64,000 nt of DNA from Hamiltosporidium tvaerminnensis FI-OER-3-3 (taxonomy: Eukaryota > Fungi > Microsporidia). A model generated the notes under the pieces. The model had not been told where the DNA came from. It worked only from the letters and a program-made list of their open reading frames with translations, and ran no database searches. Shown one piece after another: positions 3,566 to 26,455 of this stretch. Each line of letters starts with the position of its first letter. Position 1 is the first letter of the stretch. Both the position numbers and the translations under genes were made by a program. Location of the stretch: the NCBI GenBank assembly GCA_022605425.2, contig CM061253.1, forward strand, positions 620,001 to 684,000, written 5' to 3'.

Positions 3566-3579
3566 AAATAACCCTTATG
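3566..3579 (+). promoter_or_regulatory. Microsporidian-type CCC motif immediately upstream of the start codon (representative; also before 6173, 9910, 14853, 48360 and 33794 minus)
   Basis: aacccttATG, aacccATG, accccaaATG, cccccccaaATG, cccctttaaaaaaatagaaATG and accccttaaaaATG: six of the seven intact genes. Confidence 0.8.
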
Positions 3580-4890
3580 AAAGACACAGAAATGTTCACA
3601 ACAATACTCCATCTTACACCTAAAGATCCATTAAAAGCAACCACACTTCTTCGTAGCCACCTAAACACACTAACACCAACATCTGAGCCTACTACACCAT
3701 CAGCCGAAATATTTTTTCATGCAGTTCAACTAACAAATCTAATCAAACAAAAAAAATACGACACTGTTTTAGAAATAAGCATTACACTTATAAAAAAGCA
3801 TTTTCATATTTCCAACATATTCCAACATAACTACGACTACATAACACTTATTGATCAGATGTATTCATCTCCGTGCCTGCGACACTTCGATTTTCCACTT
3901 TCCATAATTCTTTTGTGTTTTTATAATTCTTTTAAAAAAATTCATTCCACAAAAAATTCTCAAATATTTTTTATTCTTTTAAATTTAAATAAAGAAATAC
4001 AAAATACAGAAAGCGTAGGAATTTTAACTGTTGTTGTTTTAGACATTCTTATTAAGAACCACCTATACTCACAAGCACTTCTCCTCATAAACAAATGTAA
4101 TTACACATTAAGAGGAGCATGTCAACTGAGTGGAAGTAAAACCATTGTTGATAGTTTTAGCTTAGGTGATAATATAGAGTTTGGTGTCTTGCAAGAAGAT
4201 AAAGATTCTAAAATCGAAAATTTACACGAAAATATCAAGGATTCTAAATTAGGTAATAAAAATCAGCACAAAACACAAAATACAAGTCAAAGTACTTTTA
4301 TTTCTACTAACTTGTTACATCTTTTCTTCTATTATAAAGGACTGGCTTGTTTGTATCTCGGTGACTACAAATTATCAATTCAGTCCTTTCATTCTTCATT
4401 TATGCTTTCAAAAAATATAAATTTTAAAAAATTTCTAGAAAAATACACAATAATAGCCAATTTATTGATTTCTAACATTTCTTATTTAAAAAAAGTGAAA
4501 TGGACAAAAGAATTAAAAAGTTATTACAAATTATATGTGTGTTTAAAAGATGGGTGTTCGGTAAGGTTTGCACATATTTTGAAGGGGTGTGAATATGAAT
4601 TTAAAAAAGATAAAGTTTTATTGCTAATAAGAAGAATGTGGGTTAGAATATTAATGGAAGGGCTTAGAAAAATAGGAATGGTTTATGAAAGGATAGGGTT
4701 AAGTGATGTAGGGGTTAAGTTAAATATTGAGAGAGAAGATGTAGAGTTTATTGTTATGAAAGGTGTTAAGGCCAAGGTTCTTGAAGGGTGGATTGAAGGG
4801 GATGTTTTGTGTGTGGGTGGTGGGTTTAGAGAAAGGGGTGGGTATAAAATAAGAGAGGCTTTGGATGTAGGAGATGTAGTTATTGATTAG
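3577..4890 (+). CDS. RPN3: 26S proteasome lid subunit Rpn3/PSMD3 (PCI domain)
   Basis: 437-aa ORF. The C-terminal segment EGLRKIGMVYERIGLSDVGVKLNIEREDVEFIVMKGVKAKVLEGWI matches the Rpn3 PCI pattern. FFYYKGLACLYLGDY helix; CCC motif 2 nt before the ATG. Confidence 0.85.
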   Translation: MKDTEMFTTILHLTPKDPLKATTLLRSHLNTLTPTSEPTTPSAEIFFHAVQLTNLIKQKKYDTVLEISITLIKKHFHISNIFQHNYDYITLIDQMYSSPCLRHFDFPLSIILLCFYNSFKKIHSTKNSQIFFILLNLNKEIQNTESVGILTVVVLDILIKNHLYSQALLLINKCNYTLRGACQLSGSKTIVDSFSLGDNIEFGVLQEDKDSKIENLHENIKDSKLGNKNQHKTQNTSQSTFISTNLLHLFFYYKGLACLYLGDYKLSIQSFHSSFMLSKNINFKKFLEKYTIIANLLISNISYLKKVKWTKELKSYYKLYVCLKDGCSVRFAHILKGCEYEFKKDKVLLLIRRMWVRILMEGLRKIGMVYERIGLSDVGVKLNIEREDVEFIVMKGVKAKVLEGWIEGDVLCVGGGFRERGGYKIREALDVGDVVID

Positions 4891-5079: not shown

Positions 5080-5806
5080 AATCACTTTATCTAAAAGTAT
5101 CACATCTTTTTAAAATATTGGCAAGTGTTATATTTGTTTTCATGACATTAACCCAGTTCTAGGTTTAACATAAATAATTGCTACCCCAACACTTCATCAG
5201 TACCCCCTGCGATGCCAAGTCCCAAAGCCTTTCATCTACCAGGTGTGTAGAACCTAATTACTAGGCGAGGCAGTTGCCCGGTGTTCGTTAATGTCCGTTG
5301 CATGGAGTGTGATCGAAGGCCGAAGCCCCCCTGGGTTCCTCCAAGACTATGCAGCATTCCCACTTACTCTACACTTTCTGAACCCAATAAACCTCTAGCT
5401 AAGATATATTTCAGAGATTTACATAGGGTCCACCTAGACAGTGCAATGTCATACCAACAGGTATTATCTGCTACTTAGCTCTCCCGGCTTTTAATGGTTT
5501 TTTGTTTCGTATCTCCCAGGCGCTAAGTCTTCTAACCCGAGTGAGCAAGGCTAGGTTTCCATGTTTTTACATGGCAATTACCTGCTAGTTCAGCTGCGGT
5601 CTGCAATCTGGTTAGTAAAAAACTACAAAAAAATCGTAGAAAAAGATTTGCCCTTTCGTCGATATTCTCCTCTTTAAACATACTCCCATGGAACAATCGG
5701 AACTTTAGTGTCCTTTTATGCCTACCAAAAATCCAATCAATGATCTTCACACCAGTTTTATACATTCATTGCCAAGCAGAAAGTTTTTTATGTGGTTATC
5801 CTCCTT
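5080..5806 (-). ncRNA. Putative ~700-nt structured RNA of unknown family, copy A
   Basis: GC-enriched island colinear with 62570-63290(+). Minus-strand hairpins include GGGGGC-UUCG-GCCUUC (5315-5330), CCAUGU/ACAUGG (5559-5574), ACUUAGC/GCUAAGU (5473-5528) and UAAAUCUCU/AGAGGUUUA (5388-5421). No reading frame stays open in both copies. Confidence 0.55.
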
Positions 5807-5904
5807 CCACTACTTGTTTTATTATTACTATTTTTAATTGTGTTCGTAGTGAAATATCCTAATTTAATAACACCATTTAGACATTATTATCTTATAATAC
5901 TATA

Positions 5905-6080
5905 TAACACCCTTTAAATATCAGTAGATTTATAATCATTACTAACACACTTTAAATATCTGTAAATTTATAAATTACTAAAACCCTTTAAATATCTTTA
6001 AATATCTTTAAATATCTTTAAATTTATAATTACTAACACACTTTAAATATTCGTAAATTTATAAGTATAGCTAACACCCA
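5905..6080. repeat. Degenerate ~35-40 bp tandem repeats upstream of glutaredoxin
   Basis: Recurring (c/a)ctttaaatatc...aatttataa...actaacac unit, including (tttaaatatc)x3. Confidence 0.7.
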
Positions 6081-6172: not shown

Positions 6173-6508
6173 ATGAAAATTCAAAATAAAATGGAAAACA
6201 GAGAAGTAGAAATACAAGAAAATGAAAAATTAGAAAAGGAATTGGAAGAAAAATTACAAGAAAATGAAAACATAATGTTAGGCAAAGAAATTTGTCCATT
6301 TACAACAGCAGCACAAGATCTTCTTAAGCAAAGAGAAATTTCATATAAATATTATCCTAAAGAGTCAAATCCCTTACTTACACAAGCTATAAGCTCATTA
6401 CACGGTGGTAAAACCTTTCCACAGGTTTTTCTTAAAAAGAAATATATTGGAGGTCTTAATGAGATGCAAATATATTTTAATGCAGATTGTAATAATCGTG
6501 AAGAATAA
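6173..6508 (+). CDS. Glutaredoxin with a monothiol-type CPFT active site
   Basis: ICPFT at the CPYC position, TFPQVF (TVP cis-Pro motif) and YIGG; aacccATG start. Confidence 0.85.
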   Translation: MKIQNKMENREVEIQENEKLEKELEEKLQENENIMLGKEICPFTTAAQDLLKQREISYKYYPKESNPLLTQAISSLHGGKTFPQVFLKKKYIGGLNEMQIYFNADCNNREE

Positions 6509-6534
6509 ATAAAGGAGGTTTATACTAGTTTTAG

Positions 6535-6660
6535 TTGTTTTATATATTTTGTTGTTAGTCTTTTATATTTTAGTGTTAGTCTTTTATATTTTGGTGTAAG
6601 TTGTCTTATATTTTAGTGTAAGTTGTCTTATATTTTAGTGTAAGTTGTTTTATATTTCTG
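6535..6660. repeat. ~20-22 bp tandem repeat downstream of glutaredoxin
   Basis: About 5 imperfect copies of tatattttagtgtaagttgtct / tatattttagtgttagtcttt. Confidence 0.8.
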
Positions 6661-19780: not shown

Positions 19781-22700
19781 TCCCTACATGCCGGGAGCAG
19801 AATTGGCTTGGAGTATTCCCTGCTTGTCGTAAGTGGCGAATTAAAGGAACTAGTCCTCCAGACTGGGGTTGGGCGTAGAGCTAACAATCCACCCTTTAAA
19901 GCCAACATGTTTCAAACCCAAAAACGTAATTAAACCCAGACGAAAAATTAAAAAAATACCTAGCGTGTTTAAACGAAAAAACGATATTTTACTTGAAACA
20001 TGAAACGTGCGTTCTCCTACATAGCCCCAGTGCCCTGAAGTGTCTGTCTGATGTGATCTCTGAACGTAATATCGACATTGTAGCCCGACAAGAAATGAGA
20101 TGGACTGGAAAAGGAATTATTGATAGGAAAGACTATCGACTCTACTATAGATGTAACGAAAAATACCACCTACTGGGGACAGGATTCATGGTTGGAAACA
20201 AGATAAAACCGCTTGTAATCGATTTTCAAGCTTACGCACCTAGACTATGTAGAATCAGAATAAGATGCAAAATTTTCAACTATAGTATCATCAATGCCCA
20301 TGCTCACACAGAAGATACAATTGAGAAAAAAAGGGGGGATTTTTATGACTTTTAGGGAAAGTATACGACGATTGTCCTAGAAATGACATACAATTTCTAT
20401 TAGGAGCCATGAACGCAATAATAGGTAAGAACCTGCCTGTAGCAGTATTGAAAATTATAGTTCACATGAGGAGCATTCTCAAAATTGATTCCGACTGATT
20501 GATTTTGCAATTAGCCGAAATTTAATTGTTGGAGAACGATTTTTGACAACAGAAACATACACGGGGTACTTGGACGATGCCGGATGGGGTACAGTCAACC
20601 AAATAGATCGCATTCCCATTGACAAGCGTCACAGCTCCAGCTTACTTGATGTTAGAGCACATCGCAGTGCCAATGCAAATAGAAATCATTTCCTCTTCGT
20701 TGCACGACTTAGAGCAGAATCTCGCACACCAGAAATAAAAAGGAACTAGGTCTGTCAGATATAACACCTGTATGTTAAAATATGAGAAAAGGAAGAAAAT
20801 ATATGAGGCAAAAACTAACGAAATAGTTAGAGAACGGAGTAAGGAAGATATAGATGACAAATGGAGAGTGCTTAAACAAAATATAATAGCAGCCTGGTAA
20901 TCTATCAGATTTTTGCGAATTTTAAAAGAAATGAATGGTTTGATGAGGAATGTACAAGCATAACCAGAGCTAAAAAAAGCCTACAACTTGAATATACAAA
21001 AAAAAGCGGTCTTCAGTATATACTGAAAGATATGAGATGCGAGAAATAAAGAAAAGAGGATATATCGAGCTAAGAAGCGAAAAGCCATGATGACTCAAAT
21101 GGAGCTAATTCGGAAATATAATACCAAACACTTGAGCAGAGAAATGTTTAGAAAGGTGAATGATACCAGACGAGCTTTTATTACACGAACGAACAGCTGT
21201 AGAAGTAAAACGGGTGAGATAATAAGTGACATTCAAGGAGTAATAAATAGATGGTCAGAACATTTTAGAGAACTACTGGGTGAATGCGGAGATTAGGCAG
21301 ACACGGAAGACATGTTTAACAAACTAGATAATACAGGTATCTACGAAAATATTGTGCCTTCTTATGAAGAAATACATAAAGCTGTAGAAAAACCGAAAAA
21401 CAATAAAGCCCCTGGGACGGACGAAATTCTTAATGAACTCATTAAAAATGCTTGTGGAAATTACATTAAGGAGTTGACACTTTACTTGGAGTGATATCGA
21501 AATAAGAGAAAATGCCTAAAGAATGGGATACAAGTCTTGTCTTTTTGATTTACAAAAAAGGCGACAGATTGAATTGTGAAAATTACCGATGAATATCTCT
21601 TCTAAACACAACGTAAAAAGTTCTGTCCAGCATTATTTTCACACGATTGCTACCTTATGCAAAGAACATCATCGGTGAATACCAATGCGGCTATCGGAAA
21701 GATAGGTCGACTTCGGATCAGATTTATACACTAAACAAATTCTGTAAAAAACATTGGAATATAAAATGAGCACTCACCACCTTTTTATAGACTTCAAGCA
21801 AGCTTATGATAAAGTCAATAGAAAAATGCTTTACAAAGCCATCAAAGAATTTAGTATTCCCCCTAAATTGATAAGATTGATTAAAATGAAAATGTCTAGA
21901 TAAAATTGCAGAATTAGAGTAAAGTCTACTCTGTCAGAACCAGTTTGAAGATTTGATGTTCTAAAGCAGGGTGACGCACTGGCATGTCTACTATTTAATT
22001 TGGCTCCAGAGAAAGTAGTCTGTGATTCATGTCTACGGGTTAGAGGTTAGATATTTAACGAGCAAATTCAAATCCTAGCATAAGCTGATGATATTGACTT
22101 TATTGTAAGATCAGAAGCTTGTTTTCTAAGTGCGTTCATAGCTTTGGAATCTGCAGCCAAAAAGATGAGCTTGATTAGAAACATTCACAAGACCAAATAT
22201 ATGACATTTAGCAATGACCAAAGACTCTCACAATTCCAAGTCAGGGATTATATCTTTGAAACAGTAGAAGATTTTGTATATTTTGTATCCCGAATAGATG
22301 TAAACAACAGCAGCTATAAAGAAATTGAAACAAGAATTCAGGCAGAAAACAAGTGCTATTATAGCTTCTTCGAGCATTTTAAGTCCTATCTCATCACTAG
22401 TAAAACAAAATTCATGCTCTTCAAACGCGTCTGAGACTATTTCTTATGCTTGGATCAGAGTCTTGGGTTGTTAAGAAGACTGATGAGCAAAGACTAGCGG
22501 TGTTCGAAAGGAAATTATTGAGACGTATTTATTAACCTAAAGAAGAAAATGACAGGCGAAGAAACGACACAACAGAGAACTCTACACTGAATTAAGGGAT
22601 GTGCCAGTTGTAGACTTAGTCTGCCTGAACAGACTCGTCTGGGTAGGACACCTGCTAAGAAGAGGGAAGCATCGCATACCTTTCAAAGTTTTGAACCATA

Positions 22701-22979: not shown

Positions 22980-26455
<3,476 letters not shown>

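Follow-up and report, generated by a model that had tools for sequence, protein, structure and literature searches.

Two related segments of the Hamiltosporidium tvaerminnensis genome as probable copies of a dispersed non-autonomous retroposon family

The two copies in the window and their genomic family

We studied two related segments in a stretch of 64,000 nt from the microsporidian Hamiltosporidium tvaerminnensis FI-OER-3-3 (assembly GCA_022605425.2, contig CM061253.1, positions 620,001 to 684,000; contig 8 in our searches). This stretch at its full length is called the window, and positions without a contig or locus prefix refer to it. The segments, copy A and copy B, had been singled out by an earlier inspection of the letters alone (the sequence-only reading), which described two opposite-strand segments with six conserved blocks in the same order and took them for a large folded RNA: a multicopy non-coding RNA gene, a ribozyme, or RNA forming the core of an unknown mobile element that is non-autonomous. 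Both segments were read and aligned again and this description was borne out: each spans ~725 nt, the six blocks follow each other in order, the strand of both segments had been assigned correctly and the earlier coordinates agree with the exact limits to within 4 nt (Table 1). Copy A lies antisense between a PCI-domain gene (3577-4890, plus strand) and a glutaredoxin gene (6173-6508, plus strand). A family profile made from diverse members places the limits at 5810..5085 (minus strand) for copy A and 62566..63281 (plus strand) for copy B, and a profile scan of the whole window yielded no fragment besides these two. Copies A and B are 64% identical to each other; the youngest cohort of the family shares 91% identity with copy A, and the youngest family member 65-66% with copy B. 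We regard it as very probable that both segments are copies of one non-autonomous retroposon family that lacks long terminal repeats (non-LTR) and resembles short interspersed nuclear elements (SINEs).

Table 1. Positions of the two copies, of sequence features within copy A and of the candidate partner element
Feature	Position	Strand	Description
Copy A	5084..5810	-	full-length, 727 nt, old family member; nhmmer score 771, profile positions 1-730
Copy B	62563..63286	+	full-length, divergent lineage; nhmmer score 501, profile positions 2-728
5′-terminal hairpin of copy A	5792..5810	-	GUGG/CCAC stem, purine-rich loop
Block 1	5766..5780	-	TCTGCTTGGCAATGA; identical in copy A, copy B and young copies
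Block 2	5525..5583	-	AGGTAATTG...GAAGACTT; holds two short local hairpins
Block 3	5386..5416	-	CTCTGAAATATATCTTAGCTAGAGGTTTATT; youngest subfamily mismatched here in an earlier-proposed helix
Block 4	5284..5315	-	CGATCACACTCC...ACGAA; copy-counting motif, 614 genomic matches
Block 5	5154..5177	-	TTATTTATGTTAAACCTAGAACTG
3′-terminal block	5084..5115	-	ends A[A/G]ATAAA, no poly(A) tail
RLE-type LINE open reading frame family	L006:2-1384, L043:118-1468, L012:2455-3726, L008, L023, L033, L048		in the flanks of repeat copies, seven loci

The genome was searched in its entirety (21,638,905 bases, 17 contigs). With copy A as the query we found at least 40 full-length matches at 91% identity, distributed over all contigs, among 1331 first-look candidates, and the statement of the sequence-only reading that the segment is present twice had to be abandoned. 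Three 32-nt motifs were counted genome-wide with up to 3 mismatches: the 5′ end occurred 580 times, the middle (block 4) 614 times and the 3′ end 468 times, and the reversed-sequence controls gave 0 matches. Because these counts are flat along the element, most copies are full length. The family comprises ~600 mostly full-length copies of ~730 nt, which add up to ~0.44 Mb (~2% of the genome). Compared with the youngest copy, identity falls continuously from 99% to ~68% over 60-odd loci, and a cohort of 43 copies shows a mean pairwise identity of 97.2%, so the family was recently active. The identity range of 99%-68%, the existence of several sublineages and the occurrence of one or more mosaic copies show that source copies have been active more than once, also in recent times. 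Copy A represents an insertion that is old and dead. At one position two 3′-terminal blocks were found exactly 340 nt apart (C1:1630039/1630379), with the same layout 36 kb away (C1:1666179/1666519); such pairs may stem from a shortened derivative of the element or from a partial tandem within a segmental duplication. A partial-tandem arrangement of the Penelope-like kind was seen at only 2-3 loci and does not describe the family in general. Pattern scans of metagenomes using the conserved blocks gave 0 matches.

Aligning copies together with their flanks revealed where the element starts and stops. The 5′ boundary is sharp and fixed at GTGGAGGGAGG... (that is, GTGGAGGGAGGATAACCAC...), with unrelated DNA outside. 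The 3′ boundary is sharp and tail-less: the element ends in ...TTTTAAATAAA, followed by 0-3 variable nt and then by unrelated DNA. Its termini read GTGGAGG... and ...AAATAAAGT, and show neither terminal inverted repeats nor TG...CA ends. Target site duplications (TSDs) of at least 9 nt were detected at 42 of 63 copies, compared with 4% of shuffled, i.e. mismatched, flank pairs; a refined search identified TSDs of 10-23 nt (median 14) at 43 of 61 full-length copies. They start with T-rich triplets and are surrounded by AT-rich DNA, and extra bases are frequent at either element junction. TSDs of variable length, the lack of terminal inverted repeats and a 3′ end that is A-rich but tail-less are what target-primed reverse transcription by an enzyme of the type found in long interspersed nuclear elements (LINEs) leaves behind. 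Of the three possibilities named by the sequence-only reading, the core RNA of a non-autonomous mobile element is the correct one, the segments belonging to an interspersed ~600-copy repeat with variable TSDs.

Some details of individual insertions were recorded as well. Insertion 30-40 nt upstream of start codons was seen at 2 of ~60 copies, and no general clustering at such positions was observed. At locus L003 an open reading frame (ORF) of 294 codons without a Pfam match (L003:2225-3106, plus strand) has its ATG directly after the last base of a young copy, and at L030 an ORF begins 35 nt beyond a copy. Two loci, L009 and L005, have in common a 9-nt extension, GTCTAATTT, between the element end and the TSD, with a near-match at a third copy (G000:C17:444627). 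This extension may be a 3′ transduction from one source locus; as a general idea, 3′ transduction was dropped, since GTCTAATTT gave 2 exact and 1 near case only.

Conserved blocks, coding potential and RNA folding

The distribution of the differences along the element is uneven. In the comparison of copy B with a young member, identity in 25-nt windows had a variance of 0.0208, whereas 2000 shuffles averaged 0.0088 and did not exceed 0.0179. Divergence outside the blocks was at least 1.3x the divergence inside them in 11 of 14 independent copies, and reached up to 4.1x. Since the blocks were defined from the comparison of A with B, the contrast is inflated for these two copies. Neutral decay after insertion would be uniform, and block-wise conservation between lineages therefore points to selection on source copies; the blocks are probably cis-acting sequences needed by such copies. 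What drew attention to the two distant copies was thus a signal of selection on retroposon source copies and not of a structured RNA gene. Such sequences might include the 5′-terminal hairpin with a promoter-like region next to it, sites inside the element to which proteins bind, and a 3′ site for recognition and priming; the 3′-terminal block is where reverse transcription is presumably primed. On this model they would not be helices within a single large fold.

The sequence-only reading had noticed no coding signal, and analysis of the shared reading frame is in line with this. The sole open frame common to copy A, copy B and young copies comprises 43-45 codons over block 4. A coding reading of this frame was considered and rejected: the encoded peptides are unrelated outside block 4, no start codon lies in frame ahead of the block in young copies, and each of the three block 4 substitutions that separate copy B from the young copies is non-synonymous in the shared frame, which indicates that it is not coding.

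We examined the proposed large RNA fold with covariance models, single-sequence folding and alignments. Rfam gave 0 matches in the whole window at the gathering score, and at E up to 10 only chance-level matches for copy A, copy B and one young copy; HDV-like (hepatitis delta virus) and hammerhead ribozymes, group I/II introns, RNase P/MRP and other curated families found no match in these scans. Folding of both strands of copies A and B showed no significant stability, with z-scores of -1.16 (A sense), -1.64 (B sense) and +0.13 and -0.90 (antisense), so that the sense strands fold slightly better than the antisense strands. RNAalifold on 17 diverse copies returned -0.87 kcal/mol and 8 pairs, with no compensatory change and no consensus fold, in a set in which many copies are decayed, which disfavours the detection of structure. 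For this reason the pair of a young copy and copy B was compared with column shuffles: the alignment reached -65.0 kcal/mol versus -60.2 +/- 6.8 kcal/mol for shuffled columns (z = -0.72, structure conservation index 0.35), and a local scan of it contained no 120-column window with z < -2. A set of five sequences had one window with z = -3.9, which does not count as independent evidence because four of the five sequences share the same lineage there. In addition, one proposed helix is disrupted by a mismatch in the youngest and most successful subfamily, which carries AGAAGTTTA instead of AGAGGTTTA.

Based on these results a large conserved RNA fold is not supported. The pairs that led the sequence-only reading to state that substitutions often keep pairing can be read in the alignment, but they do not exceed column-shuffled controls at 35% divergence; its large folded RNA or ribozyme fails with them, as the deeper alignment shows no significant covariation, the fold z-scores are unremarkable and Rfam has no match. 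The only well-supported structural feature is the small 5′-terminal hairpin, which covaries. Its stem differs between lineages, with GUGG/CCAC, GGGUA/UACCC (copy B), AUGUGG/CCACAU, UGGUU/AACCA (L077) and GAGA/UCUC (L033b), whereas the loop is always purine-rich, and each stem has p 0.003-0.03 versus shuffles.

Transcription, a candidate LINE partner and copy B

A tRNA search revealed no tRNA head, and the Rfam scans of copy A, copy B and the young copy at E up to 10 revealed no 7SL or 5S head. From element position 80 onward the sequence contains internal T5-T7 runs, which make a full-length transcript by RNA polymerase III (Pol III) unlikely. At position -1 a G is present in 19 of 49 copies against a background of 10% (p = 1e-7). 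An extra 5′ G is known in other non-LTR elements as a trace of cap reverse transcription. The 3′ end of the element is AAATAAA, and the polyadenylation hexamer of H. tvaerminnensis is A[A/U]UAAA (PMC10542269). The missing tRNA, 7SL and 5S heads, the T5-T7 runs, the extra G and the host hexamer at the 3′ end suggest that the element RNA would be capped and made by RNA polymerase II (Pol II) from an internal promoter.

The enzymes for movement of the element would be supplied by a resident LINE. The genome contains at least 150 reverse transcriptase (RT) loci, many of them with intact ORFs. They include a LINE with APE and RT that ends in (TTTAT)n, a second LINE group with weak N-terminal APE matches, and Ty3/gypsy elements. 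A further LINE was found in the flanks of repeat copies (Table 1). In its ORF a Cx2Cx8Hx4C knuckle precedes the motif RPDIF...IEVGIT, an arrangement characteristic of restriction-enzyme-like endonucleases (RLEs) of the R2/R4/Dong type. The ORF lies directly downstream of an RT match. Its 3′ end is tail-less, ...TTATTAAATAAA (that is, ...AGAATTTTATTAAATAAA), and one 5′-truncated copy (L048) is flanked by a TSD of 13-14 nt. At four independent loci the 3′ end of the RLE-type LINE faces the 3′ end of the element, tail-to-tail, at a distance of 12-110 nt. Because of the tail-less end, the TSD of 13-14 nt and the four tail-to-tail loci we consider this R2/R4/Dong-like LINE the best candidate for the partner, with roughly even chances that it is the actual one. 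The APE LINE of L062/L063 was discarded as a match for the 3′ end of the element, since it ends in (TTTAT)n.

A more specific proposal, which we find rather improbable, combines these features: the blocks and the 5′ hairpin could form an RNA module, consisting of an internal promoter and recognition sites for the RT or its ribonucleoprotein, by which a tail-less 730-nt RNA made by Pol II hijacks an RLE-type LINE; or copy B could be a retained or domesticated source gene under selection. If the module existed, this would be the first LINE-SINE system described in Microsporidia, with a SINE that borrows no sequence from its LINE.

Several observations concern the LINEs and the remainder of the window. 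A GC-rich hairpin, GGCAGGGAGCC...ACTGCC, recurs in the 3′ untranslated regions (UTRs) of the LINEs at L061, L064, L065 and L069, where the differences between subfamilies are compensatory, and several of these LINE copies are located near contig ends, inside larger duplicated blocks. At 21213-22095 (plus strand) the window contains a decayed fragment of an APE-type LINE reverse transcriptase, which is 27-34% identical to residues 383-691 of the L062 protein. It lies ~2 kb upstream of a region of homopolymer tracts (24406-26210) with two A runs (717 and 254 nt) and one T run (375 nt). GC content across 24-26 kb of the window is 6.7%; either an unusual AT island or an error of assembly might account for this. 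Short tandem arrays occur at 5905-6058 and 6526-6657 (periods 38/55 and 22), one on either side of the glutaredoxin gene, the first of them between this gene and the 5′ end of copy A. One protein encoded in the window has an 8TM_micro domain, a Pfam domain specific for microsporidia.

Copy B differs from the bulk of the family. Its 5′ variable region matches nothing else in the genome, and the 3′ half has few, weak genome matches at 72-73% identity. GC content is 33% in copy B versus 42% in young copies. A copy on contig 6 (L037) is mosaic. Counted over the sites that distinguish young copies from copy B, it agrees with the young copies at 112 and with copy B at 12 in columns 1-440, whereas in columns 441-670 agreement with copy B prevails, by 40 to 26. 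Two other, old copies are half B-like in columns 441-670. The mosaic and half-B-like copies show that a B-like lineage existed and exchanged sequence with the main lineage, apparently in the way that happens in template switching. Copy B is the lone survivor of this lineage, which is ~35% diverged from the main one. An imperfect inverted repeat surrounds copy B (~62541-62558 and ~63289-63302, ACTATTAGTCAGCAAAAT and ATTTTGCTAATAGT); it may be due to chance in AT-rich DNA or represent a palindromic target site.

Alternative explanations and known systems

A number of points weigh against the retroposon explanation and its proposed mechanism. Copies A and B themselves have no recognisable TSD. 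This is why the sequence-only reading saw none, and its statement stands for the two copies but not for the family, with 10-23 nt TSDs at 43 of 61 other full-length copies. The terminal match between the element and the RLE-type LINE, ...TTTT(AT)TAAATAAA, covers 13 of 15 nt and is not significant (p ~0.1 by shuffling), and BLAST of the element against 12 RT loci, their 3′ UTRs and the RLE-type LINE sequence revealed no extended similarity. The case for Pol II and a cap is drawn from indirect sequence features, and the region of copy B is covered by 20 sequencing runs from 7 studies, none of which is recorded as RNA. Finally, the blocks of copy B are 90% intact while the remainder is 58% identical, which also fits selection on copy B itself. 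This last observation speaks for an explanation in which one locus, copy B or an unsampled copy, is a host gene for a non-coding RNA, the blocks serve a cellular function and the ~600 other copies are its retropseudogenes, as with Alu and 7SL RNA. Such a gene would also account for variable parts that are single-copy, for a GC content that has drifted to 33% outside the blocks and for the missing TSD. However, no known RNA family matches copy B, the definition of the blocks by comparing A with B inflates the contrast for B, and no relative appeared in the metagenome scans. Moreover, other old lineages share B-like states and there is a mosaic copy, as expected of competing retroposon lineages. 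We therefore judge a host gene to be quite unlikely. Even less can be said for two segments that are both genes for a large structured RNA or ribozyme with a fold kept by compensatory substitutions, which we hold to be very unlikely. Conserved blocks do alternate with variable sequence, some double substitutions preserve pairing (for example CCUA/UAGG to CCAU/AUGG, and the 5′ hairpin) and the sense strands have the slightly better folds, but ~600 copies with TSDs, chance-level Rfam matches, unremarkable fold scores in single sequences and in the young/B alignment, the absence of compensatory changes in RNAalifold and a helix broken by the most successful subfamily argue against it.

The remaining explanations accept a mobile element and assign it to another class. 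The element could be an internally deleted derivative of a resident LINE that has kept only the 5′ and 3′ ends of the LINE, comparable to RIME/NARTc or the R2 SIDEs. In agreement with this, the tail-less ...TAAATAAA end and the length of the TSDs resemble those of the RLE-type LINE, and most copies are full-length with fixed 5′ and 3′ ends. However, the element has no BLAST similarity to the LINE coding or 3′ UTR sequence compared, the match of the termini is not significant, and when coordinates were compared by eye none of the RT loci listed had an exact match to the 5′ block where its 5′ end would be expected, so we consider a deletion derivative unlikely. A solo LTR or a derivative of a DNA transposon, such as a miniature inverted-repeat transposable element (MITE) or a Helitron, would likewise be a high-copy, non-coding and sharply bounded unit. 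However, LTR elements produce TSDs of a fixed 4-6 bp and those of MITEs are also fixed in length, whereas the TSDs of the element range from 10 to 23 nt; the terminal inverted repeats and TG...CA ends are missing, and among the copies examined no pairs flank an internal region; this explanation has next to no probability.

The SINE-like retroposon family remains our preferred interpretation. Interspersed with defined ends, bordered by variable TSDs, non-coding and accompanied by an autonomous LINE in the same genome, the element has the properties of a non-autonomous non-LTR retroposon. SINEs in the strict sense have a 5′ head derived from tRNA, 7SL or 5S RNA with Pol III A and B boxes and are usually <500 nt long (PMC2996970); with a length of 727-730 nt and none of these heads, the element falls outside this definition. 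It can be described as a long, probably Pol III-independent, tail-less SINE-like retroposon, and in Microsporidia this kind is apparently undescribed. The word SINE was not found in the main text of the microsporidian genome and transposable element literature that we searched for it. The H. tvaerminnensis assembly (21.64 Mb, 17 contigs, 26.6% GC) contains 39.56% repeats, and 25.45% of the genome is listed as 'other' (PMC10542269). Large-genome microsporidia hold at least 25% unclassified repeats, and the element explains ~2% of this genome; a recently active, LINE-driven retroposon system would contribute to genome expansion in this lineage. The ~600 dated insertions could serve as presence/absence markers for the population history of Hamiltosporidium, and the conserved blocks are candidate recognition sequences for reverse transcriptases of the RLE type or for the Pol II machinery of the host.

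Four known systems are comparable to the element. R2 SIDEs are short, internally deleted R2 elements that are specific for 28S rDNA, keep the 5′ HDV-like ribozyme and the 3′ UTR and occur in low copy number; they are tail-less, and the reverse transcriptase is thought to recognise a 3′ RNA element. The element resembles them as a tail-less, non-autonomous passenger of an RLE-clade LINE, which in its case is proposed. Unlike R2 SIDEs it is dispersed in ~600 copies, with no detectable ribozyme and no LINE-derived UTR. RIME and NARTc have a conserved 5′-terminal motif like the element, thought to be an internal Pol II promoter; the trypanosomatid Pr77 is a promoter and ribozyme. RIME/ingi and NARTc/L1Tc are further similar in being non-autonomous and non-LTR, in a length of ~0.3-0.5 kb without a Pol III head and in variable TSDs (PMC2996970). 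However, RIME and NARTc are deletion derivatives that are similar to their LINEs along the whole length (PMC2996970), whereas the element has no such similarity in the sequence compared. SVA elements of hominids are also long, non-coding, non-autonomous non-LTR elements with variable TSDs and no Pol III promoter, and they are mobilised in trans by a LINE (PMC3287187). They differ in their composite structure (Alu-like, variable number of tandem repeats, SINE-R), in the poly(A) end and in their dependence on the APE-type L1 (PMC3287187).

The closest analogue is the pair EhSINE1/EhLINE1, which shares with the element a non-coding unit of 500-700 nt and a few hundred copies in an AT-rich parasite genome, TSDs and well-conserved 5′ and 3′ ends (PMC2996970, which cites Mandal et al. 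2004, PMC329514). The two elements have no sequence relationship. EhSINE1 shares ~70 bp of its 3′ end with its LINE, whereas no extended LINE homology was found for the element; it also has internal repeats of 26-27 bp and is transcribed and polyadenylated, whereas the element has no internal repeats and is known from DNA alone. EhSINE1 of Entamoeba histolytica measures 500-600 bp and is present in ~400 copies, non-coding, flanked by TSDs and with conserved terminal regions (PMC2996970). Like the element, it lacks a tRNA or 7SL head and so falls short of a SINE in the strict sense; the LINE that drives it has a restriction-enzyme-like endonuclease without site specificity (PMC2996970).

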